NCBI GenBank assembly: GCA_964035545.1
Contig: OZ037765.1
Location: 7,264,698 to 7,328,697 of the forward strand
Direction: 5' to 3'
Source of the DNA: Bugula neritina
Lineage: Eukaryota; Animalia; Bryozoa
DNA length: 64,000 bases
Every line of letters starts with the position of its first letter. The first letter of the stretch is position 1. A program made the position numbers and the translations under genes. Under the pieces are notes generated by a model. The model saw nothing but the letters and a program-made list of their open reading frames with translations. It did not search any database and was not told the origin of the DNA. Shown here in pieces: positions 1 through 48,800 of the stretch.

Positions 1-162
1 AATTTAAACTTACTCAAATCTTTGCTGGATTTGACATTATTGTTTTGTCTAAACTGAATTGATTTGACTTGCTGCAATTTTTACTTACTTTAATTCTATA
101 CTAAAAGTAACACTTTAAGCTTATGGGTGGAAGTTATGACTATGAGTAATTTTAATACTAAC

Positions 163-475
163 CAGACACATCTGTAACAAGTTGTTTCAAATCAAACAAC
201 TCTTTTAAAGGCCCGCTTAAAATATTATTGATAACACCTTCTTCCATATCAACAAGTATAGATCGAGCCTTTAAACTGCTAATTTTTTCTCTTCCAGAGC
301 CAACACGAATTTCTCTTCCTGACTTGGCGTCCACATTTCGAAAAAATGAGTTGAATGATTCATCGAATAAACCTAATTTATTATTTGCTGCATATTCTCG
401 TAGAGCCAAATCCCAAAACCTACATCCTATTTGATTACCACACTGGCCAATTTGAAGAACAATAGACTGAGTCAT
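163..475 (-). CDS. TUBE1: Epsilon-tubulin, first coding exon (gene continues off the left edge)
   Basis: MTQSIVLQIGQCGNQIGCRFWDLALRE...ARSILVDMEEGVIN...QLVTDVSG matches the epsilon-tubulin N-terminus (MTQS start, DMEEGV). Donor GTTAGT at 162; the ORF-track stop is intronic. Confidence 0.93.
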
Positions 476-2879: not shown

Positions 2880-6123
<3,244 letters not shown>

Positions 6124-14829: not shown

Positions 14830-15480
14830 ATTTATGGTCTTCAAAGTTCATCCTCATTCTGAATTGAAAATATCAATACTTATACTTGTAGTTATACTTA
14901 ATCTAAATCTTAGACTTAGAGTTGTACTAATACTAATAGTAATACTAATAGTAATAGTAACACTAATAGTAGTAGTAATACTGATACTAATACTTAACCT
15001 TATAGTTATACTTATAGTTATACTAATAGTAATACTTATACTTATAGTTATACTTAATCTTGCAGTTTTAGTTTCATACTAATGGTAATACTAAGTCCAA
15101 TCATAATCATAATGATAATACTAATACTAATAGTTATACTTATACTTATAGTTATCGTAAATCAAAATGTAATACTAATAGTTATACTTATTTACTATGA
15201 GTATGATACTTATAATAGTTATAGTAATGCTAATACTAATAATAATAGTATAACATTAACTAACACTTTTAGTAATAGTAAAACTAATAGCAATAGTAAT
15301 CGAATAATCCTAATAATTATTTACTTTTAGTACATAATTGTAATACTAATACTAATAGTAATAGTAATACTGTAATAGTAATATAAGTAAGTGTAAGAAT
15401 AATACATATAATTTACTAACTAATAATAGTACTAATAGTAATGTCTATGGTAATAGTAAAACTAATTATAATATACAAAG
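14830..15480. repeat. Degenerate hexamer tract (ATACTT/ATAGTT/ATACTA/ATAGTA)n
   Basis: Clear period-6 repeat; it generates the spurious I/L/V-rich ORFs 14834-15330. Confidence 0.85.
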
Positions 15481-20532: not shown

Positions 20533-23500
20533 TTAGTTATTGGATCCAGTTTCTGTATCCAGCATTGCATCCAACTCCGACGAGAGGTTTTCCAACATAC
20601 AGCCTATGTCATTCAGCACATCTCTCTGAATCTTCTCATTTCCCATCACATTTCTCGGCCTAAAATGAAGTGTAATTCAAAATAGAGCCAGGAGTTACAT
20701 ATATTTAAAAAATACAGCGTCAAATGAATGCACATGGCAATAGTTTTACCACTCACTGCAAACAAGTGATCACTTTTCTACCAGCTTTAAAAATTAGTGA
20801 CAATTAGCAAGCAATGGTTGGGAACTAGCTAAATCTAAATAAAATACTGCAGGGATAAGCAAGAAGCCAAAGTGAAAAGCAAAATTTTATGCCCCAAGGT
20901 GTTTGAGGCTGCAATGCAATGTGGCTAAATTTTTGGCCATAATTAGTTGTTAGTGGTAGCTCAAAATGATTGTCAAGGTGCTTGTACACCTGGTGTACTC
21001 AACTTAACTGGGTGGGATCCATTAGGGTTCGGCTATTGTATCTTCTCAATAACTGATAACAAATACCAAAAAACAAACATCAATATCAGTGCAAAGGTAT
21101 CCCAATCAGATATCCTTATTAAATTGTTAAAGAACTAGTGGTCTTCTTGCACCAAAAACAACTAAAAATTTATCTGCGCTGATGTACTCTTTCACCAATA
21201 CCTATTTGATGGAAAAGTAGGGTCACACGGTGGAAATCTAAGAATTAAATTTTCTCCCATCAATTGAGGTATTAAAAACCAACATCGAAATCCAATAAAT
21301 TAGAAAAATAAATTCTAATGTAGATTCAACGTAATAACTTACTGCTCAGAGACTAGCTTAATATGGTTCTGCTCGTTGTATACAGGCTGCACGTGCATCA
21401 CTAAAATATAAAACAAACTTTATTTCATTCATAGTTAAACTCTAAGTGATAATGGTAAATTTGCAGATAAAAGGTAAAATTATACATAAAATAATTGCAT
21501 ACCTGGTTTTGGCATTCTTTTTACAGTATCAAAGTCAAATTCACCATCCTCATTATCTTCAGATTCTAATGCATCATCAAGACTATCTTCAATACAGTCA
21601 GCACTACCTCCAGTAGTAAGTGGAGGTTGACCAAACTTTTGTTTTATAGTGCCTGCATTGTCATTGGCAAATGGTATATTTTCAATACTATTTCTTGGTG
21701 TTGCTGAGTTACTTCTATCAGTTATTCTACTATTACATTGATTTGTTGGTGTTATGTCCATTTCATTGTTGTTATTGCTATTGCAATTTCTTGCCTCTTT
21801 CTCAGCTGAACTCGCCCGTCGCCTAGCAGCAAGACTCGACTCAATAACATTCTGTAGCTTCAATCCTTCTCGAAATGGCGATGTCCTACGCTCTGCAACA
21901 TGTTCATTGGTTCTAGTACCATTTTTTGGCTGATTTGCTTTCATTGCCTGGAGATTGAATGCTATTGGAGGTGGCGGTGGTGGGAATTCAGGTGTTTCCT
22001 CATCTTCATTAACCTCACAATTAACTTGCTCATCACTATTTCTTTTCATTGACATAGTTCGCTTTGGTGGAGCTGGAGGCTTTTTTGCTTTAATGTTTAC
22101 ATCATTTGATAGAGTGGCTCCCTTGGTTACCGGTGAAGAAGGCACGGAACTTGACCGGTTTTCTCCTTTACTCAATTGATTTTTAATTTCTCCACTTTGA
22201 ATTTGGGCATACGGAGAACGAAAGTTAGCAAAAGGACTAGGCAATGATCCCAGTCCAGGAGAAGTACTTGAGCCAGTTTTAGATATGGGTGATGGCGGTA
22301 ACGCCCCAAACTGCTGCAACTCTATTGACTGTGAGCTCTGTTTTCTAGAATTGGTGCGACGTAAAGTGGCATATTGAGCAACATTATTGTCCAAAGAATT
22401 CCTGAACTGTTGGTCTATAGAGTCTTGACTGGAGTGTTTGCTCATGGTAAGACCGTGTATACCTTTCATAGGACCTTTGTTACTCGACTTTCTATGCATC
22501 GAGCCACCATAAGAAGACCCAGAATCTTCAGAGGATGGTGGTGTAGAATCCCTTTCAGCTTGACCAAATGACTGACACCTTGGTAGGCCAAAGTCTGTAC
22601 TACTGTTGACAGAATTACCACTGCTGGATCTAGACATACCAGATTTTGTCATTATAGGCACTACCTCACCTCCTGAGACATGCCTACTTCTCGATCTAAA
22701 TAACAAATAGTTGAAAATGCATTTCAAAAGCAAGTAAATTATGGCTTTAATTCAACTGATAATACATTGTTTCACAGAGATTTAAGCTAACCTGTGATTC
22801 ATGATTTCCTTGAGTGAATTATTGGCTGCCACACTGTAAGGGGAACACTCTCTGACTTGTGCGGACATATTCTCTCCTGAATGAGACCTGTAAGGGACCT
22901 GTCCATTGATGGCATATCCACTATTAGCAGCCATGTCAGCTGACCACCTTGGCATTGTGCCAGTAACTGGAGTCGAATCTCTTGAACTATGAGATTGCCT
23001 TTTGTTAAATTTCTTTAAACGGTTTACAGCCAGCAATATCTTTTTTTGGTGGCCTAATGAAGCAAAAAGAAAGAATAACATAAATAATTTGATTTTAACA
23101 ACAATTAAAATAGGAACTATAGATTTTACTGTGCCAAAACATACATCAAGGGGGTGTTCATTAACCAACTTGATGATTAGTAAAAAAACACACTAGGTTT
23201 ATTTAAGGCATACGTAACTATAACCTATAGGGAAACTATTATATTATATTGGATTTAGAAACAAAAAGGTTTTAGCTTTGTGGGACTGTAACCTATTAAT
23301 GGCATTTGTCCAGGCTTGATAATTTCCGCTCTTTGCACACAACACCAAACAAGACACTAAATAAATTACCCTAGTTGTAAGTTGTAACAAGCTTTGTTTT
23401 TACATACAAAAGCCTTTACAAATTAATGGTGACACATTGAGAAAAGAGTTAAAACCTGTGGCAATTTACTCACTGAAAGTCATAAAACTTTCAAATTTTA

Positions 23501-32500: not shown

Positions 32501-35500
32501 ACCCCGATGATACACTCCGTGCCTTTATTGCGTTATGCCACTAAGTTTAATCCATTGAGACTAATCAACTCGTCCAACATTATCTTGGAATGCGTAAAAT
32601 TACCGTAATGAGATCGCCAGCAACGAAAGTGAGGCTCTGCGGATCGTTTACATTGCTGTAACTCTTCACAGCCTTGACTGTGATGGCTCTGCTCGCCTCT
32701 ACAACAGACACAATGCCACTTGACAACCTAGTGATGGCAGTTTGAGAGCAAATATAAAATAATAAAACAATACAGCTCCAGACACATGGCATCATACATT
32801 CCCATTTCCTGTCTACAGATGAGTCTTTCATCTACACACTTTTGACAGATGAATTACCAAATAAAAGGCTTTCTAGCTTGTACGAATTACCAGGGTAACG
32901 TGACAGGCAAATGGCAGATAATAATCTTTATATCTGCTGCAGTAAACTTTGTACCCAATCCAGGTGTTTTATAGTTGAGCTAAGTTTTTATACTCATCTA
33001 GATTTTTTTGTAATTTAAGCCCAGCATAAACAAATCTTCCTGAGCTGATTACTCTAAGAAGAAGGATTTAAGTTGAAATAAATTAAAAATCGTACTGCAA
33101 TGGGCATAAAGCCTGTCAGGGATGGTTAAAAAGCTATTACTATTATACTACAAAAACTGGTAAGTTTTGGCAGGTTCCCTACCACAGCTCTATCCCTTCC
33201 AGTAGGCTACAATCCTCAATATAAACTAGCCAACATCCACCTTGTTTTATCAGTACATAAACACTCTACCTAATTAACTAAATCCGTCAAGAACAGTTGT
33301 ATATCATTACGGCATGATTTATTAGAATGGGCACCCAATGTTGTGCAATATATCCTCTATAAATCAACCTAATATACTTTTTATCAAACCAATCCCAGAA
33401 AGTCTTAAACCTTTTAACATTTCATTGCTGCTAGTGTTATTGTATAATTATACTGATACCTGCTTATAACCCACTCTAAGCCTAATCTGGACTTGATTAA
33501 TTACCCAAATGCTAAAAATAATCTGAATGATGAGCGAAACCCAAGTATAAATCATGTTATAATTTGCTATAATACTCCAGATGAAGATGCAATAACATTT
33601 ATAAGATGATCATTAATATATCAAGTGTCAAAATGTAGGAAATATTTAAGTAACCAACCAAACTGGTGATAGTAAGCTGCTCTTATTAGGGGTTGAAGGT
33701 GCCATGAGCAAAAAATTGACCAGGGTCACAGCCGAGGTTTCAAATTCTCCTCAATGATGAAGAGTTATAAACTCAAGTCAGATATAGTGAAATCACAAAT
33801 TGACTGAATAACTGTACGCCAAGGTTAATTAACCGACTGTTGCTATCAATTTAGCATTTTTACGCCTAATGTTAATGAAGTTTGGCTCATTGGTGAACAG
33901 CCCACCATGAATAAGACCAACTTTAGTTAAAGGATTTATCTCTGTAGAACCAGTTCTCTGAAACTACTAGCAAACATTATCAATCTTATATGTCAAAGAT
34001 CAAAAAGATCAGCCAAGATTTATATTGGACAATTTGTGAGAAATAGTAACTTGTGCACACCGGTTTCTTATACAAGAGGTGCCAATATCCTTGCTATCCC
34101 CTATAACCAACACTAGCATGTCAGCCTTTAGTAGGTCTCTTGCAGAGTTGTGGCTACATTTCTGCAGCTTTAAATGTCAAAAACAGTCCAATGTTTACCC
34201 AGTTATCAAATAACAGTATATACTAATTACAACTAGCAGTTTGCTAGGCAATAAAAATAAATATTATCTTTTTGGTCACAGCAGTTGTTGCCCTTCTACT
34301 GGTGTCGTCTGTCTACTACTAAATATATAACAAAATAAATGGCATACGACTGACTGTCTAACACTTCCCAGTAAGACACCAGTTGTACGTATAATTTCCA
34401 GTCACTTTCTATTTTGGAGAAAAAAAAGAGCAATTTCTCAGCCTAACTTTCTAAATGAATTGAAGAGCTAATAGGAATTACAACAGCACTAAAAATTGCC
34501 CTCTGTCTCTGAGATAACCTAGTATGCTTATTCCCACTCTCACAATAGGCTAATCACGCACTATAGGTTAGGAGAGCTCGCAACTAATCAGCTACCAAGT
34601 TTTATTCATTAGCAGCCAATTTCTGTGTCAATCCATTTGGCTGAGTGGAAATGAAATTCTAACTAAATGAAGATTACGTGGCTGTAAGCAAGCAAATGCA
34701 GGTAATTCTAGCTAAGCAAAGTGTCCCACTCAAAAATGAATGAGAGAAATTGAGAAAACATTAATTGGAGATCCGATGCAGGAAGACAACTGTTTAACTA
34801 AACTAATAGCAGGTGGAACATATTGCCAAGAATAAAATGGCTATGTCAATAAACTTAGGGTTAAATTATTACAAAACAAACAGAGAATCTGAAACCTATA
34901 TCTGCTAAATGTCTCCTGTTTAACACTTTTCACTTAGTATCTTTGAATATACCACATGGCATGTCAACTGCGATCAACAAACAAAAATGGAAATTGGCAT
35001 CACATTTCTGGATATTAATTTTCAAATCTATAAAAAGAATCATCATGACTATATCAAAATACAACTAATAGCCTTAAGAGTTATGTACCCAAATCTTCAT
35101 CGCATTACATAAAATAAAAACACTGCAACTGTAAGAAGACCTTAAGGTCTACAATAACTGCTCTTTGATCATGTAAAAACTCCACCTGGGAGATTGAGTA
35201 ACTGTCTCCCATATGACCTGGTGATGGTGTCAGACAGCGTTATGGCAGACAAACACAGGTCATCTAAAGCTTACTTTCAGTTCAATGGATCTAGCAATAC
35301 ATGAAACTGCCCTTCTATATAACTCTTCCACTTAGTATACCGTCCTATTAACCTACGCTAAGTTAACTTAGAATTTAGTTATGCCTCCAGCTACAAGAGC
35401 TATAATATTACAGAAATTAAGTTTGTCTGTAACAACCTGCAGGACTGGTTACTATCCTTTCAAAAACAAGCTGTGAACAAATATCAGTTTTTACTAAATA

Positions 35501-38500: not shown

Positions 38501-41500
38501 GGTCTTATTTTGCAAGCAATAAATTCTCCAGACTGCCTGTCAAATATGTCAGGTATTCAGCAGCAATTATATAATATAGTGCTGCCACCACCAGCTTATG
38601 GAGCTGAATGGGTAATAGCTGCTTGCAACTAAGCAAAACATTGGCAGCTTGAAAATGTTTGGAATGAATTATAACACTTTTGTTTATATTCTGCTTTACT
38701 CTGATTCATTGGGTTAAAACAAATCCTGGAAAGATTTAACATTATCATTAGGTACCTGGCTGCGTTTACCTAAATATTGACGTGGTGATAACTCCTAAGT
38801 GAATGCCAAAAGAGTCTTGGCAGATATTACATATAATGGAAGGAGAGAAAGAAAAAAACTCATGCTTTACTTGATTATGTAAGCCTGTACAGGATGTAAT
38901 CAACTTTTTTCAAAAATTATCATATGGCAGCAGCCCCAGTGACCGACAACTATTGTAAAAAAATCTAAATTAATTTGTTTGTGCTATTGACTTTTTACTC
39001 AAGAATACTATTACAAAATCTACTCCTTCATTTCACTTGGAGGTAAAACAAATGCAAGCAGACACAAGCATAGAGGGATATCAAGTTAAGATAAACACTA
39101 CTCATGCTAACAACAATACACAGTATTACATTCCTACTCTAAGCTAAAGAAACATATAATATAGCTTTATAGTTAAAACATTCAACTCACATTAATGAGA
39201 AACTTGACAGCATTGATTTTGCCACAAAGAGCAGCTTCATGAAGTGCTGTCCCTTGATGAGTCTGCCTCGTGATGTCTATGTTAGTCTCCATGAGCAGCC
39301 TGTAAGTAAAGCCATATTAAAACTGCACCATAAACGACCAGTGAAATTTTAAACTCTTCATGTACAAAAACGAATTTTATGAGAAGACAACTTTTAAAAT
39401 AGATAAAAGACCGGCCTAAATTATTATTAGCTGGTAGATAATCTATTATATTTTTCAGTGATAAAATACAGTAAAAAAACAAAATCATGTCAAGTATAAT
39501 TTGTTTACTTTTTTGTAAAAGTAAAAATCGCTACTTTTTTGTGAAACTGCTGACACAAAATTGCCAGGTATATCTATCACACATTAACCAGGAAGGAGTC
39601 TAGGTAACTCAAAAACAAGATGAGGTGGTGGTGCTGATGGTTGTAGCAGTCTATACATAATTGCTGTAGAAATAAACCCCCCCCCCCCCCCCCCCGTGTA
39701 TATGACCACAGCTAACAACTTAAGTGTATAATTTGGAAGCACTGCTAAGACACTAAGGTGCAATTCTCTTCAATCTAGTTTACTTAGCCAAATCAGAAAA
39801 AAAAACAAAAAAATCAACATTTTCTGCATTAAGCAGTTATCAACAGAATATAAAAGTAAAATTTCCAAGTCATTTGTAGATATAATCAATATATACCCAA
39901 TAAATAACATTATACAGTGAGAATAATTAGCTTATTAGCTTTCCCTGGTGACCTTCCGACTACGGAGTGTAATCAACAGAAACTACTCTGCAATTACCAC
40001 ACTTGGTAGGTTAGGGGGCCTTTTGTAATAACACCAACTTCCCTCAACCTGAGCAGATTACTCCTAGATTTAATGCATGTCACATGCAGACGTATTACCA
40101 ATAGACCATGTAAGATTGGTACATTTAGTACCTTGAACCAATTCTAGATACTCACCACTATAACTTATATAAACTTCTGCAAGTTCAAATGCAAAATGCA
40201 TACTTCTAGGAAATAGCTGTGCAACTTTTATTACATGCATTATTTTATTTCATATCTTAAATTTATGAATCATGAGTTCATTTTTCAAAATGTTTAAATT
40301 AAGTGCTTAAAAAATGCATTTAAAGAATGTATTCCTGAAAAATTACCCTGGAGCAGTTTGACCACAACCCCAGCTGTTTTGGCAAAACACATTTAATGAC
40401 ATTTTCATCGACATAGTGGTAAATTGGCTGGTTGTTTTTGGCAGATGAGTAGCACGCTGGCTGGCTGCAACTTTATACAATTCTGATTGGCTGGACTCTA
40501 CATGACCAGCTAATGATTGTATCTGATTGGCCTAATAATGTAGAGTTTTATATAAGTTATAGTGGTGATATTTTAGAGTTGGTACACACCCCTTTTTTGG
40601 TTGAGTTTTATAATCTGATCACGCTGTAGTCATCTACAACACTTCAGTGTATGGGGAAATTATTAGTATTGCGAAATCTGTTTTGGCTTATATTGCTATG
40701 CCAGTTTTCTGACTTGGTTTGTAATAAACCATAGGCAGCTATATAACTTAGGTGATTTCATCAAAGGTAGACATTACTTAGACCTTAGAACATCAAATCA
40801 ACCAGTGCTGCTGTTACTTGGTTTTATTGCAAAGCAGTAGTGAGAGCATAGCACACTAGCACAGTCACCTAGCTGCAATGGCAGTGGCCACACTAAACTC
40901 ACCAGTTTTATTAAAATATCTTATGTAAGGCACTTAAATACACTAGCCTAGTCTGTTAGTATGTAGAGCAGTAACACAGTTACAGCAGTCACATCACCCC
41001 TCTCTATCTTGTCTACCAAGTACAGAGGTTGCAAAAATGATAATCATTTCATGATTTAGTTTTAAATCAATGCATATTACTGAATACATTCTCATAGTCT
41101 GATTATTTTGCGCTTCAGTTTACTTTAATGTGATAATTTAAAAAATTGCTTCACATGCATATTACAAATGCATGAACCTACGCTAACCATAAATTATTTG
41201 CTTGTGTACTCACTACTGTTTTATTTTAAATTTATATAGCAGTAGCTTTTTTAATCAATCACATATTAATCTGCAAGAGTTTAATTGCACAGATAATGTA
41301 GACATTTTGTATAAAAATTAGTATTAACATGTAATGCCTTGCATGTGGGTCTATATTGCCAGTTGGTATCATCACCTATAATACCATGTTGATAACCCTT
41401 TCTTGTATACGATTTACTTAGCGAAACAGCATGATTATCTTACAAATGTAATGACATCAGCCGTGGGACAATATAGTCTAGAATCTAGACTCTAGATTCT

Positions 41501-44500
41501 TTTAACTGTGAAGTAATCAGCCTCAAACCATTGCTGGATGAAGTGCCTACACTTAGCTGTGAAGCTACTGCAATAACATCAACAATTTTACTAATGAGTT
41601 TTCAATACATGTTTTAGTCAGTTGGGTAAAATACAAAGGTTCTCTGGTATATGCTAGAATAAATGATGATTAAACATTGGATTTGATGAACATTTTTTCA
41701 TGTTGTGTGATGCAACATGATAGTTACAGAGAAAACGCTGATCCCACTAAAACTGTAATGAAGGCATTATATTTCAACACTGACTGCATACAACATTGTT
41801 ACCAACAGAATATTATCCATATATGAGTTTGTATTTTGCAAAATAAGCATCGAGTCTGAGCTGCCATTTTCTTTCACCCAAAAACCATTAATATCAGACT
41901 TTAGCTTACAAAGCATAGTGGTATAGCACATGCATATACAATAGCACACCAAAAAAAATATTATTAAGTGCTACACTTTATTGGTTACCAAGGGTGGCTG
42001 CAGAAAGCACAGCAGACTATTATAATCTTTTCTAAAAGAGGTGCAAACAGTAAGCTCCAGGACTATTTAGGATATCAAGTCCTTTATGGGTTGATTGCTC
42101 TTTTAACCTGGATTCTAAGAATAGCAATTAATTTAGTTTAGAGTTACTGCATTCTAGTCAGTTGAAAATGGCCTTTCTTTCCAGGTGGCATGGCCAGGAA
42201 ATAAGTAAATACTGTAAGAGGATCGCCATGTAGTAGAAATAGGTGTGCTCCGGAAGCACTATAGTGAAGTTTTAATGGCTGGCATATGGTATTGGATACT
42301 AGCCCTCAGAATGTTTTTGTCATCTTCCTGCCTCAATGGTGGTTGATGATTACTTTGAGTGAGGAAAAACATGTATTGAAAACTCATTAGTATAGCTTCA
42401 GAGCTAGGTGCAGATATTTCCTCGAACAATGACTTGAGACTGAGAAGCTCACGTTAAAATGAAGCAAGCTGCTAACAAAATTACTTCATAGTTGAAAAAA
42501 CTGGACTATATTGTCCTATGGCTGATGGCATTGCATTTGTGGGATAAACATGCTGTTTCACTAAGGAAATCATGTACAAATTGGTGATGATACCAAGTAA
42601 CAGTATAGACTAGCATGCCAAGCACTACAGGTTAAAGCTCATTTTTATATAAATCGTCTATGTTTTCTGTTGCTAAAAGCTGTGCATTTTAACTCCTGCA
42701 AATAAATATGCAACCAAGTCAAAAAAATTACTGTTGTAATTTTTTTAAGTAAAATAATGGTGGGCACATAAGCAACTATAATTTATGCTTAGCACATGCT
42801 TATACATGTGTTTGTCAGTGTGCTGTAAATATATGCTAGTGATGATAAATATGGTGCAGCACTGCCATTACAGTTTGCTGACTGTGCTATGCTATTGCTA
42901 CTGTTTTGCAATAGTAACAACAGTGTTTGATTCGCTGCACCTAAACAGTGTCTACCTTCGATGAAATCACCTAAGTTATATAGCTGCCTATGGTTTATTA
43001 CAAACCAAGTCAGAAAACTGGCATAGCAATATAAGCCAAAACAGATTTCGCAATACTAATAATTTCCCCATACACTGAAGTGTTGTAGATGACTACAGCG
43101 TGATCAGATTATAAAACTCAACCAAAAAAGGGGTGTGTACCAACTCTAAAATATCACCACTATAACTTATATAAAACTCTACATTATTAGGCCAATCAGA
43201 TACAATCATTAGCTGGTCATGTAGAGTCCAGCCAATCAGAATTGTATAAAGTTGCAGCCAGCCAGCGTGCTACTCATCTGCCAAAAACAACCAGCCAATT
43301 TACCACTATGTCGATGAAAATGTCATTAAATGTGTTTTGCCAAAACAGCTGGGGTTGTGGTCAAACTGCTCCAGGGTAATTTTTCAGGAATACATTCTTT
43401 AAATGCATTTTTTAAGCACTTAATTTAAACATTTTGAAAAATGAACTCATGATTCATAAATTTAAGATATGAAATAAAATAATGCATGTAATAAAAGTTG
43501 CACAGCTATTTCCTAGAAGTATGCATTTTGCATTTGAACTTGCAGAAGTTTATATAAGTTATAGTGGTGAGTATCTAGAATTGGTTCAAGGTACTAAATG
43601 TACCAATCTTACATGGTCTATTACAGAATTACAATAATTTTCAAGCATAAACTGATAATTATTTATAAATCAAAACAAAGGATGGCATTCGCATAATTAA
43701 AAACGCAAATAAACTACATAGAAGTTTTATCTTTGAGTTAAACTAGCAGTGGCAGCTTATTCAGCAGAAGATAAACATAAGGCCTCTAAGAAATCATTAA
43801 AGGTCAGATAGAAATACAGCAGTCAACTTACTGGAGTATGTCTGTAAAGCCCCCTCTTGCTGCCAGGTGAAGAGGTGTAGACCTCTTAGTGTCAGCACTG
43901 AGATCAGACCTGTCCAGTAATAGGCCGGCACATAGAGTGCTCTTGACGAGTAGGTCTACAACCTGGTAATATACAATGTGTAATAATAGAGTGCTATAAT
44001 TAGTAGCAATCAACTGCTACCAGGTTACTACACCACAGGGTGCTGTTACATTCAACTAGATACATTTCAATGTAGAAGTGAATATGATTTGTGGCCAGCC
44101 TTTTTAACTGAAGGTTTACTGCTCGCTGTAAACACAATACATCCATTTCTCAGAGGTAGGTGCAGTAATGGAGAAATTGAGAAAAGGCTGTGTTCTAGAT
44201 TAAAAATGTAGCAAAAGAAGTTATGTTCTTGCGAGAATTTCAACCTGCACCCCAAACCAAAATTTTACAATAAAATTAAAAAACTTAAGTATTAAGCTAT
44301 TTCAATTTTTCCACTACTGCTCCTAAATGATTTTTCAGTGCTGCTATTTGTTTTGACCCACTTGGTATTCTACTATTTCAATATACAACAACTTTAAAAA
44401 GTTCTAACTATTAAACAGTTACTACAAAGTAGACTACCAACAAAATATAAGTCATTTAAGGCTTTGAACTACAACAAGATTCTTAGATGGGCAGACATTT

Positions 44501-45845
44501 CAACAAAACCATATACCATCACTACCTTGTAAAATATCAAAATCATTTGTTATTAGCTGGACAGTTAAACAATGCCTAGCATACTGCTATCAAAACACAC
44601 CATACTCCACACCATTTATCCATCAATGTTATAAAATCAGCTGTTAGTTACAGGAGAAGTTTGAGTATCAAACAAGTATTTGTTGAGTAAGATTGAAGTG
44701 TACAAGTTGATGGCAGATCTATGATTATGGGACATGAGTTTAATTGGTAGCAGGTGCTTGGGTAATAAAAACTCCACTCATAGAAGACAGGTTAGCAAGT
44801 AGAGCCAGGGTGGGTGACTGAGAAGAGATGGCTGAGAATATCCTGATTAGTATTGACCAAAAAAGGTAGCTCTGCTAAGGATATTAGGCTGTGGTGAAGG
44901 TGACAGAAATCAGGGGCAAGATTCACCACAAACAAACAAGATTTGGGGAGCTGAGGAGGTAATTTATTACTGAACTAGTGGACTGTGCTTTACAGATAGT
45001 GATGTAGGCTGAGCAGAAGAGAAGTGCAAGAAAACCACTTCCAAAATAAGGTTTGCCGCACAAAACTGAGGTTAAAGGTATAAAACTGGTCAGGCAGCAT
45101 GGCCAAAACACTGGCTGGCAGCATTGCACCCAGAACTGGAATAGCATAAGGTCAGTGGGTACTCACGTGATATTTGCCAAACTCGCAGGCCAAGTCTAGA
45201 GAGGTTTTGTATGCATGACTTTCGACAGTTGGGTCTGCCTTGTACTTCAACAGCAGCAGCACCTAATGCCAACAAATAGAATATTAGAGTGAGAGAGAAG
45301 ACTGCTAAATGTAAATGTACAGTAAAATATTGTTATTACAGGGAGGGGGTGGGGGTGAAAAGTACTTCCTTCTACAGAGTGTTGCAATGAGAAGGTCAAG
45401 GGTACAACTCTACAATACATAAATACATGCAATAGTGTACTAAAGTCAGTCACTGCCAAATATTAAGCATTTATCATATGAGTTTTTCAATTCCCTGTGA
45501 TGATTGCCTCTTCAAAGCGAATGTCAAGTATATTGCCCAATAGAGATAGCATATCTATAGAATATGAGTTCACCAACAGTCAACTACAGCTACCAGGACC
45601 CAACTTCAACCATGAAACTTAGGAAAAGTACCCGATAGCATTATTTGCTCCAGGTGCAGTGAGTATCAACATAACCAACTCCCCTATGCAATCTTCCTAT
45701 TTTATGTAAATTATCTAAACTTTCAATTTACTACAGGCAGTGCAGGTGGAGATAATATTACTACTTATCAACATTGCTGCTACCACTTTTACTCCCACCA
45801 ACACTATTCTGCTACCACTCCTACCATTACTACTACCACTACCCT

Positions 45846-45884
<39 letters not shown>

Positions 45885-48800
45885 ACCTACCCGACTACTA
45901 CTACTACACCAACTACTAATACAGTGTTTATTATACTGAGGCTATACTATAGCCTAGTACCGCCATTACTTTTAACTATCAACATTGTTTTCATCATCTT
46001 AAACACTCTTTCTCTAGAACGTTGCAAGATACGTACCACTTCCACATGTCCATGCTGACATGCAAAGTGTATTGGAGTTTCTCCATTGTTTGAAGGCTCT
46101 ACAGGTGATGCCCCAGCTTGTAGTAGCAATGTAACAGGCTCCATCAGCCCCTGCCAAGCTGCATAGTGCAGGGGCCTCATACCTGCAGAGAGACATACAC
46201 ACCTGGTGAGGTGACACTCAAACACATCATCCAGTGAGTTCACCAGTAAACTTTACCAGTAATTCACTTTCAATATATCGAGTTTAAGAAATGTAAAATA
46301 TATTTTTTCATACAACAGAGAGCTTTCCATGACTATAAAGTAAACAATTTTAGTGACAGAAGAATTATAAGTGACTCACATAGACTAAAGGAGGTGAAAG
46401 TTGTCAAAAGTATATAAGGGAGACAACTTGCAATATGAGAACATAATGACTCTTTTGTAAGCCTTACAATAAACTAAGTTGAGACAACAAAAAATAAAGA
46501 ATTGAAACTAATAGCTGCGACTTTTGATCTAATCTTTTTTCTATTCAACATTGACTAGCCTGTTGAGACAACATTATGGCACAAAAGACTAATGTGCTAT
46601 GAAAACATAATTCCCAGGGAAGGAGCCAGTCTTACACTTAATTCTTACAGATCAACATCAAAGACTTGGGCTTATCTTCCTTGTCTATTTACAATAAGAT
46701 ATAACTTTTTACAAAAAAATATCCCTTTCAAAAGATATTACAAAATTGAATAAAACTGAAGGCAAGTGGTTAAAAGTTCAACAAATTGATGATAGTTTAT
46801 AAAGAAGGGCCTCGCTTTTACTAAAATATATGAAGCATGGCAATTCTGAAACTAAATGCATTATATACTTAGGCAAAGGAAACAACATCTAAATGGGAAA
46901 AGACTATTGTAACCATGGCAACAGCTTACTATTACACTATTGGAAGCGATAGCAAGTTAGTAAACAGCTGATTCAACTAGTATAACACGAAAATTTGCTC
47001 TTGATATGTTCTGACACTCAGAACCTGTATGCCACGCAAAATAGCTATTAAAATTTTGTGCCAAGATCATATATTAATGTTAACTAAATCATACATAGTT
47101 ACAAGTTAGCTGACTATTTAGTAGACGCTGCTGTACATTAACCCTACATGAGACTAGTGAAAGTCTAGCAGAGTGTGTTCAGCCCAGACTGCACTTACTT
47201 ATATTTCATTAATTTACCTTTATTATCCTTTATATCTGCCTGAGCTCCATTGTTTATCAACAGGTTTATACAGGCAGCATTACCTTGCAATGCTGCCTGG
47301 TGAATGGCTGCCATTCTACAAGAGGTGAACACCATTAATTGTTTATTATGGGAATAATTATACTTCAGAGTAATTAAACTGCAATGCAAGTAAACCATAA
47401 AATAGTATTAGTAAATCCATATGTCGGCTGGTAACCAAAACCAACTGCAGTGAGTACTTTTGTCCACCTGCAACTACTACTGACAAACAATAAGCTGATG
47501 TAAGTAGTGCTGCATAGTCTTCACTAATAGACTTATAGGTGAGTAAGTACCAGGCACCAAATACTCACTATCTCAGAGCACCTCTGGCCCAACTATCTAA
47601 ATTAGCTGATTAGAAATGTTTAACTTAACATCTTTAGGAGTAGAGAATGTTTAAAAAGCCTCAATCACAGCACAGCAGATGGAACAAAACTGCTTGCAAA
47701 GTCAGAAAAGTTACTCGAAGTAAAAATAAATCATTAAGAGACTTTTGCAAAATCACAGTCACTTTTACAATCAGAGATTATTCTACAGACCAGCTGGGCA
47801 GGGTTCTAGAACCAGTGAACTCAGAGTTACGTGACTGGAGGGAATAAGTGCGGTGATGGGACATGACCATATTTTATATTGTATTTAGCCAGTGTGCCAA
47901 GTCTAAGTAAGAGTAAACACGTTGTATGGGAGGCTACCACGTACTGGGCAGAGTGGCTGAGCATGTGGTATATTATACTGTGTGGTTATAAACTAGACTG
48001 TTAAGAGTAGAAAGCCGAAGCTCTTAAGACTGGAGTGTAAAGGTTCAAGTGTTGGGTCAAGAGTCTTTTGTATTTTTCCACAACTACAACTAATAGGCAG
48101 TATCAGGTTTCTATTCAAATGTTTTAATCATGTGCTGCTACACTGCACTGAAAACTTCTGCAGGGGGTTGTTATAAAATAAACACGAATCAACAGTAACA
48201 GTATTATTTTTTGAGCAATAGCCAATTCCCAATTTCACTCTTACAAACAGCTTTACTTGCTCTGAAAACATGGGGACACATATGAGTAGTGACAGCATAG
48301 AGGGGCGACACAATGAAATCCATAACATAATAATATATAATTCGATACACATTGCAACTAATTACAATAGAATGGTAAGCAATTTAAAATTGACAATACT
48401 GTTAAATGGCCATCAACTGCATCCACTTGTAGAGGCAGGTAATTGTTCAACAGGTGCTGACAATTGAAACTGTTCCCTTGCAGTTGACATTGGTCAAAGG
48501 AAATGGAGTGGTGGTAACAATTATTGCTCACAAAAGACTGGATTTTGGCTAGTTGCCAGTAAATCTAGGCATACAAGTATAGTCCCAGTAAATACTCACC
48601 CCTCTTCATCTTGGTAATTTATGTTCAACTTCTTTGAGGAGGCCAAGAGTTCTGCAAAAGACAGCATATAGATATACTTAGAGCAGCAGCAATCATAAAG
48701 TACATTAAACTCTAAAGGCAAGGGCTGTTATATATACTTAACCGTTGGTATAAAAATTAAAAAATTAGTTTTTCCTCTCCATCAGGCGGAAAGTTGGCAG

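Follow-up and report, generated by a model that had tools for sequence, protein, structure and literature searches.

A probable young, non-autonomous ISL2EU copy with an inherited foldback structure and lineage-copied arms in an intron of a Caskin-like gene of Bugula neritina

The stretch of DNA analyzed here, referred to below as the window, comprises 64,000 nucleotides of the genome of the bryozoan Bugula neritina (contig OZ037765.1, positions 7,264,698 to 7,328,697, i.e. C1:7264698-7328697 in a genome of 216 Mb), and it contains a 3.5-kb foldback in which two long inverted arms are perfectly identical over their outer part and strongly diverged further inward. We interpret this foldback as a young, non-autonomous 3.5-kb copy of an ISL2EU transposon (PHIS/PIF-Harbinger superfamily) that inherited its structure and whose arms were copied from one another along the lineage, a reading to which we assign a probability of about 0.88. 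The window copy was inserted very recently, and the element that moved in already possessed the foldback structure, since two near-identical copies at unlinked sites have the same arms and the same step in identity. Thus, what looked like a striking local event is replaced by a more ordinary cause, namely a young insertion with inherited structure.

The arm structure was measured in three ways, by repeat finding, by blastn of one half of the foldback against the reverse complement of the other half, and by global alignment in 50-column windows, and all three agreed that window positions 40100-40762 and 43622-42960 are identical as reverse complements at 663 of 663 positions, with no mismatches and no gaps. 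A perfect inverted repeat of this length cannot have arisen by chance. The identity of the arms is first broken at 40763/42959 by an A/G difference, and inward of this point the global alignment gave 72% identity in a 50-column window and then 60% or lower within about 100 bp, with many indels. The inner arms extend to 41615/42366, are about 65-85% identical in their best blocks and surround a core of 750 bp (Table 1). A preliminary description of this DNA had reported the mismatch-free outer arms of 663 bp, the step at 40763/42959, a core of about 750 bp between recognizable inverted inner arms, and an old, diverged state of these inner arms. Each of these points was reproduced, the first two by the three measurements, the third by the inverted blocks of 77% and 85% identity and the exact 27-mer, and the last by a three-way comparison (see below) in which the right inner arm was the outgroup.

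Genome searches with the arm and with the interior as queries recovered at least 26 full-length copies, which were aligned and which measure 3.03-3.59 kb and are 84-100% identical to the window copy. The flanking DNA differs on both sides of every one of these 26 copies, indicating that they are separate insertions and not segmental duplications. Two of them, C2:17758524-17762046 and C1:13066097-13069619, are unlinked and have different flanks, and each is 1 nt off the window copy in 3523 (the three copies differ pairwise by 1-2 nt); both share with it the 663-bp perfect arms and the step. The 22-nt terminus pattern occurred 127 times in the genome, compared with 0 occurrences of the reversed control, and the matches pair into size classes of about 3.5 kb, about 2.07 kb and 5.9 kb, plus one element of 9.25 kb and one pair spanning 16.7 kb. 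The 3.5-kb class comprises about 35 copies or more. The class of about 2.07-2.09 kb is a second non-autonomous class with the same termini (variant AATAGACGATGTAAAKTTGGTA), represented by at least 16 pairs among the listed matches (for example C1:4934594-4936686, C1:6035787-6037873 and C5:14619038-14621123) and with an arm match of about 85%. A 9-kb copy on C7 (8920621-8929613) showed no notable open reading frame (ORF) in the parts read (L008 and L054), and the possibility that it holds a transposase was rejected, its extra 5.4 kb or so being other repeat DNA.

The ends of the family are uniform, all 57 unique ends reading AAT followed by AGAC. Two of the insertions landed in another repeat whose uninterrupted copy lies in locus L008, and the two paralogous empty sites obtained in this way read AATT, whereas the filled sites read AAT[AGACC...GGTCT]ATT. 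The published ISL2EU target is A|AT|T, in which the 2 bp AT are duplicated and are flanked by two conserved bases, an A on the left and a T on the right (PMC4482050), and, read by this convention, the empty sites indicate a cryptic, palindromic 2-bp AT duplication within an AATT target. These empty sites ruled out three other readings of the junctions: element ends AATAG...CTATT without a target-site duplication (TSD), a TA duplication of the Tc1/mariner-like type, and any target duplication of 3 bp or more. Direct repeats of 3-4 bp flanking the element were found in none of the 26 copies, and a 9-bp TSD was absent from the comparison of their flanks. The base preceding AAT is C in 34 of the 57 ends, about 17% being expected from the window GC content of 33%, which suggests an extended palindromic target preference, CAATTG. 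The repeat in L008 (C7:8919121-8922812, positions 1-70 and 3461-3524), whose paralogues were struck at least twice (copies L038 and L040), may be a favored landing pad for the foldback family.

The genes of the transposon group were located by six-frame Pfam searches of the genome for DDE_Tnp_4, THAP and YqaJ. The best DDE_Tnp_4 matches (E ~1e-44, open frames of 271-276 amino acids with 0 stops; Table 1) lie within long elements with the same termini, and the best THAP matches of the genome lie 1.2-1.9 kb upstream of these DDE matches on the same strand. YqaJ exonuclease matches (E ~4e-17, 334-amino-acid open frames) lie within the 9.25-kb class, e.g. at C1:21303958-21304434, where the match is divergent from the transposase; the spans that contain them are C1:21302301-21311551 and C1:14654817-14671567, and they also adjoin DDE matches on C7 and C8. 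The 5.9-kb elements (C2:15409485-15415435 and C3:28652588-28658521) have open THAP and DDE frames and no YqaJ match, and, if YqaJ were needed for movement, they would constitute a transposase-only intermediate class dependent on the 9.25-kb elements. Since ISL2EU elements combine a THAP-DDE transposase with a second gene whose product has a YqaJ exonuclease domain (PMC4482050), this partner gene content led us to choose ISL2EU over a Spy-like insertion. These results also bear on three statements of the preliminary description. The likeness of the termini to those of Academ, which it had proposed tentatively, is contradicted by the AATT target, by the missing 3-4-bp TSD and by the THAP-DDE_Tnp_4 and YqaJ partners; its report of no clean TSD gives way to the cryptic AT duplication inside AATT; and its report of no transposase is right for the window copy, which keeps only a decayed relic.

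The insertion chemistry, and only this aspect, could alternatively be Spy-like, with TAGACC...GGTCTA placed precisely between AA and TT and no TSD. A duplication-free AA|TT insertion also predicts AATT empty sites, and Spy, which belongs to the same superfamily, inserts at AAA|TTT without a TSD and has terminal inverted repeats (TIRs) of up to 1474 bp (PMC4122938). However, the partners carry THAP-DDE together with a YqaJ second gene, i.e. the ISL2EU set, whereas Spy has a single ORF; the target here is AATT preceded by C and not AAATTT; the Spy motif GGANNNNG is absent from the termini; and the A|AT|T pattern is exactly that published for ISL2EU (PMC4482050). We therefore regard a Spy-like integration as improbable.

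Copying between the arms was analyzed column by column, by typing of diagnostic sites and by an arm tree in 24 copies (48 arms). In every copy the outer arms are 97-100% identical over about 600 bp, after which identity collapses, and all 24 typed copies show the step, at about 610-675. Over the outer 600 bp the distance between the left and right arms of the same copy averages 0.5% and is zero in eight copies, whereas the distance between copies averages 3.5% and reaches a maximum of 6.9%. At 74 alignment columns the same derived base is present in both arms of some copy (316 cells), compared with 68 cells in which it is present in one arm only. The 71 variants common to at least two copies are always present in both arms, and private variants, whose sister copies may be unsampled, number 49 in one arm versus 40 in both arms. 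The terminal 22-mers likewise co-vary between both arms of the copies (AAGATTGG, AAGTTTGG, ATGTTTGG and AAATTTGG). In the maximum-likelihood tree of the 48 arms, the arms pair by copy or by subfamily (e.g. L040, L041 and L055, support 100/96-99), and the left/right label needs 15 changes on this tree, no better than shuffled labels. The paired derived states and the pairing of arms by copy indicate that arm-to-arm copying was repeated, and that the arms did not simply decay independently from an identical ancestor. The arms of older copies differ by 1-1.5%, which indicates that homogenization in resident copies is slow or absent, and this pattern fits a copying process tied to the active lineage, i.e. 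to excision, gap repair or replication. Taken together, the evidence for arm-to-arm conversion in this foldback family is unusually clean.

If no homogenization had occurred, and the arms were identical because the copies are young and because the founding foldback event made them so, simple decay would predict perfect youngest copies and arms that differ by 1-1.5% in older ones, as is seen. Nevertheless, subfamilies up to 6.9% apart in their arms each have near-identical arms, and simple decay is likewise opposed by the 74 paired-derived columns, the left/right sister pairs at 100% support and the mosaic tracts of opposite direction described below. Moreover, the inner arms, which stem from the same old duplication, are just about 80% alike and are not near-identical within subfamilies. 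We give very little credence to this explanation.

The boundary between the homogenized and the free-drifting part of the arms can be read base by base. From element position 617 inward, most copies have distinct left-type and right-type sequences, and 19 of the 24 copies are from this point purely left-type on the left and right-type on the right, which places the ancestral limit of identity near position 610. In the window subfamily, which consists of three copies, the left arm is instead right-type at 12 of 12 diagnostic sites between 617 and 644 and becomes left-type again from 664. This right-to-left tract has a minimum length of 28 bp and a maximum length of about 55 bp, occupies approximately element positions 611-663, and shifts the step from about 610 to 663 in this subfamily only. 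The sharp step at 663 is the end of a conversion tract. Copies L038 and L041 show the opposite, left-to-right direction, their right arm being left-type from 617 to 664. Because the tract of the window subfamily is common to three near-identical, unlinked copies, it arose in a shared source element before the insertion into the window.

This last result bears on the origin proposed in the preliminary description, i.e. a long-TIR element that is old and resident and in which local conversion or template switching at the window locus recently homogenized the outer arms. Perfect outer arms beside diverged inner arms, and a visible tract at 40709-40762, are what such an event would leave. However, the same arms, tract and step are found in two unlinked copies 1 nt apart from the window copy, and the step is present in 24 of 24 typed copies, so that the tract predates the insertion and a local origin of the structure, which we consider highly improbable, is refuted. 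What stands of the earlier proposal is arm-to-arm copying as such, which is real according to the 74 columns and the mapped tract, but it was not an event at this locus. Collapse of differing arms to identity by consensus polishing has in its favor that assemblers are known to have difficulties with long perfect inverted repeats and that the identity is known here from the assembly, but we find such an artefact scarcely credible, since several young subfamilies at many loci show no difference between their arms in 600 bp, older copies retain 1-1.5%, and the L048-L051 copies inherit one identical single arm difference, and collapse would neither grade with copy age nor preserve such differences.

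Comparison with the transposase-carrying elements clarified how the 3.5-kb form is built. Positions 1-2017 of the element are collinear, at 80-87% identity, with the left end of L030, a 5.9-kb transposase-carrying element, and extend far enough to enter its DDE domain at the C-terminal end: positions 1-1382 are 86.8% identical to L030 1501-2879 and positions 1790-2017 are 81% identical to L030 3361-3608, and L030:3450-3608(-) matches DDE_Tnp_4 positions 117-158 (E 1.1e-8). This collinearity shows that the "unique core" consists of the region downstream of the transposase and a relic of its last codons. A search of the window frames gave neither an open frame nor a Pfam match in this relic (about 41970-42196, minus strand). 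In the genome search with the interior as query, homology ended at inner position 1423. The right inner arm has solely an inverted cross-match, at 71-73%, to the transposase-3' side of the transposase-carrying and two-gene elements, and never to the other side. Over 311 shared columns the left inner arm is 91.3% identical to L030, the right inner arm is 83.0% identical to L030, and the two inner arms are 79.7% identical to each other, the right inner arm being the outgroup. These identities, together with the inverted cross-match, point to an old inverted duplication of the left interior as the source of the right inner arm, which either would predate the split of the foldback family from the 5.9-kb lineage or would evolve faster. 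A DIRS-like retroelement, with long inverted terminal repeats and no TSD, was also tried and rejected, because, when the interior was searched for complementarity to the joined ends, only chance-level matches of 8-27 nt came up, and the idea became unnecessary once the DDE partner was found.

Each outer arm contains in addition a pair of 48-nt inverted repeats (Table 1). The 21-nt core motif of this repeat has 231 matches in the genome, and 100 of the 100 listed matches lie within arms of the foldback family, their distance from a terminus being about 54 bp or about 465 bp. A free-standing miniature inverted-repeat transposable element inside the arms was rejected, as none of the 100 listed matches of the core motif falls outside the arms of the family and no flanking TSD was present; the pair resembles a module internal to the TIR. 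In the 2.07-kb and 9.25-kb classes, just the outer copy of the 48-nt repeat is present. Tandem subrepeats were not found in the arms, where Tandem Repeats Finder gave just three trivial arrays of 2-3 copies.

We propose the following sequence of events. The transposase-3' end of an autonomous element, made up of the TIR, the downstream region and the C-terminal relic, would have been fused with an ancient inverted copy of itself, producing two tiers of inverted repeat. The resulting element would be mobilized in trans by members of about 9.25 kb that encode the THAP-DDE transposase and a YqaJ-type exonuclease, as we infer from the shared termini and arms, and one copy would have entered an AATT site in an intron of the Caskin-like gene with duplication of the central AT. 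Repeated arm-to-arm copying along the active lineage, presumably by gene conversion or by template switching during the repair of breaks or gaps, would keep the outer 610-690 bp or so near-identical, whereas the inner tier would be too diverged to join in this copying, so that the sharp step persists. One right-to-left tract would have moved the step of the window subfamily from about 610 to 663 before the subfamily spread to at least three sites.

Several points weigh against our interpretation of the foldback as a young ISL2EU copy with lineage-copied arms. The TIRs of the foldback family, which are 610-690 bp long, start with AG where GG is usual and are 2.5 times as long as the catalogued ISL2EU maximum of 259 bp, although these features belong to a descriptive range and do not define the mechanism. 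The partner gene set is predicted from six-frame domain matches and their coordinates, not from gene models, and the trans-mobilization of the window element is likewise deduced. An AATT empty site would fit equally well a precise, duplication-free insertion of an element with T...A ends between AA and TT. As for the copying, the 40 private variants present in both arms could derive from unsampled sister copies, and it may take place during transposition, during replication or within resident copies, the 1-1.5% arm differences of older copies making homogenization in resident copies at best slow.

An extension of the proposed mechanism, which we offer as a speculative and rather doubtful idea, is that the identity of the arms is kept by the transposon's own machinery: the transposase would make breaks at an end, the element-encoded, lambda-Exo-like YqaJ protein would resect them, and repair would copy from the other arm. 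If this were true, ISL2EU elements would carry a recombination system of their own, by which each end is proofread against the other, and tracts starting at the terminus and fading 610-675 bp inward would explain a step that is sharp and moves slowly. ISL2EU elements are poorly studied, and long, self-correcting ends beside an encoded recombination exonuclease provide a testable idea for the role of the exonuclease gene. The family is in itself a useful data set, as it offers a few dozen dated copies in which the boundary of a homogenized inverted repeat can be read per base, with tracts in both directions.

The domain order and weak structure matches of the surrounding minus-strand exons make it reasonable to regard the host gene as Caskin-like, with the element in the intron between the ankyrin-repeat exon and the SH3-like exon, which supports the intronic position given in the preliminary description. 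In the short ORFs of the exons, Pfam detected neither an SH3 nor a SAM domain. A transcript running through the element would hold two perfectly complementary stretches of 660 nt, 2.2 kb apart, from which the formation of double-stranded RNA (dsRNA) by the host pre-mRNA is a fair expectation. Recombination between the perfect arms that inverts the interior would be physically reasonable; its product would be exactly the reverse complement of the element, within unchanged palindromic flanks, and indistinguishable from the other insertion orientation. To the host, a perfect 660-bp intronic hairpin in a neuronal scaffold gene may matter as a potential origin of dsRNA, of editing or small RNAs, and of fragility during replication. 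Elsewhere in the window, two long open frames of low complexity, one Ile/Leu/Val-rich (14834-15330) and one Tyr/Thr/Pro-rich (45774-46058, on the strand opposite to the ankyrin exon), are probably periodic simple-sequence tracts. An exon-like ORF at 158-475 (minus strand) starts with MTQSIVLQIGQCGNQIG, which we take to resemble a tubulin-family N-terminus.

Table 1. Coordinates of the foldback, its parts, the neighboring exons and the transposase matches of partner elements (window positions unless prefixed by a contig)
Feature	Position	Strand	Basis or remark
Left target residue A (40100) and 2-bp AT target-site duplication (40101-40102)	40100..40102	.	Pre-insertion site read as AATT
Element proper (AGACC...GGTCT), 3517 bp, probable non-autonomous ISL2EU derivative	40103..43619	.	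Full-length copies at unrelated flanks; terminus pattern
Left outer arm, perfect TIR, 660 bp counted from the first base of the element	40103..40762	+	Repeat finding, blastn, global alignment
Pair of 48-nt inverted repeats inside the arm	40134-40181 / 40539-40586, with its mirror image at 43136-43588	.	357 bp apart
Conversion tract in left arm	40709..40762	+	Alignment and diagnostic-site typing
Left inner arm	40763..41615	+	Collinear with the region between TIR and transposase 3' end of transposase-carrying elements
Inverted inner block	41289-41379 / 42580-42670		77%
Inverted inner block	41403-41481 / 42501-42579		85%
Inverted inner block, exact 27-mer	41589-41615 / 42366-42392		
Unique core, 750 bp	41616..42365	.	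Repeat finding, global alignment, homology to L030
Decayed DDE_Tnp_4 transposase C-terminal relic, limits approximate	41970..42196	-	Homology to L030
Right inner arm	42366..42959	-	Ancient inverted copy of the interior on the left, transposase-3' side
Right outer arm, perfect TIR	42960..43619	-	Repeat finding, blastn, global alignment
Right AT duplication (43620-43621) and target residue T (43622)	43620..43622	.	Ends and empty sites
Upstream ankyrin-repeat exon of host gene	45947..46243	-	Ank, E 2.9e-13
Downstream SH3-like exon of host gene	32580..32831	-	Top solved-structure matches Caskin-2 and Caskin-1 SH3 (E 0.009 and 0.08; weak)
Long Ser/Pro-rich C-terminal exon of host gene	21480-22733	-	
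DDE_Tnp_4 matches in partner elements	C2:15411464-15411949, C3:28656062-28656547, C1:21309044-21309529, C1:14664349-14664834		Others on C7, C8 and C9

When the foldback family is compared with known systems, Academ shares with it only a loose likeness of terminal letters, and differs in that no 3-4-bp TSD is present here and the partner transposase is a DDE_Tnp_4 with THAP and not of the Academ type. PIF/Harbinger sensu stricto differs in its 3-bp (TWA) TSD, which the flanks here disallow, and in that the second gene here is YqaJ and not Myb/SANT (no search was directed at a Myb ORF). The resemblance to the Drosophila elements Galileo (P superfamily), FB and Tetris (PMC2775673, PMC4079207) is one of architecture, since these too have a short middle segment enclosed by arms that range from several hundred bp to about 1.2-1.7 kb, are prone to form stem-loops and exist predominantly as non-autonomous copies. 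In contrast, their TSDs are 7 bp (Galileo) and 9 bp (FB), their transposases belong to another superfamily, and the arms of FB and Tetris consist of tandem subrepeats, which the arms of the foldback family do not have. Spy (Han et al. 2014, PMC4122938) is a sister group in the same superfamily, has a palindromic A/T target without a visible flanking direct repeat, and includes some families with very long TIRs (up to 1474 bp) whose expansion is unexplained; it differs in its AAA|TTT target, its single ORF without YqaJ and its GGANNNNG motif, compared with the (C)AATT(G) target, the two-gene partners and the terminus AGACCATG found here. With respect to ISL2EU (PMC4482050), whose catalogued members have TIRs of 6-259 bp that usually start with GG and a catalogued average length of about 4.8 kb (Han et al. 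2015), the foldback family differs in TIRs of 610-690 bp, in the AG start, in a two-gene partner of 9.25 kb and in the second, diverged tier of inverted repeat that makes it a foldback. It shares with ISL2EU an animal host, the existence of non-autonomous deletion derivatives, the A|AT|T target with AT duplication, and partners with THAP and DDE_Tnp_4 and a YqaJ second gene. Apart from the two descriptive features of TIR length and first dinucleotide, which diverge, every mechanistic hallmark of ISL2EU that was examined is found in this family.

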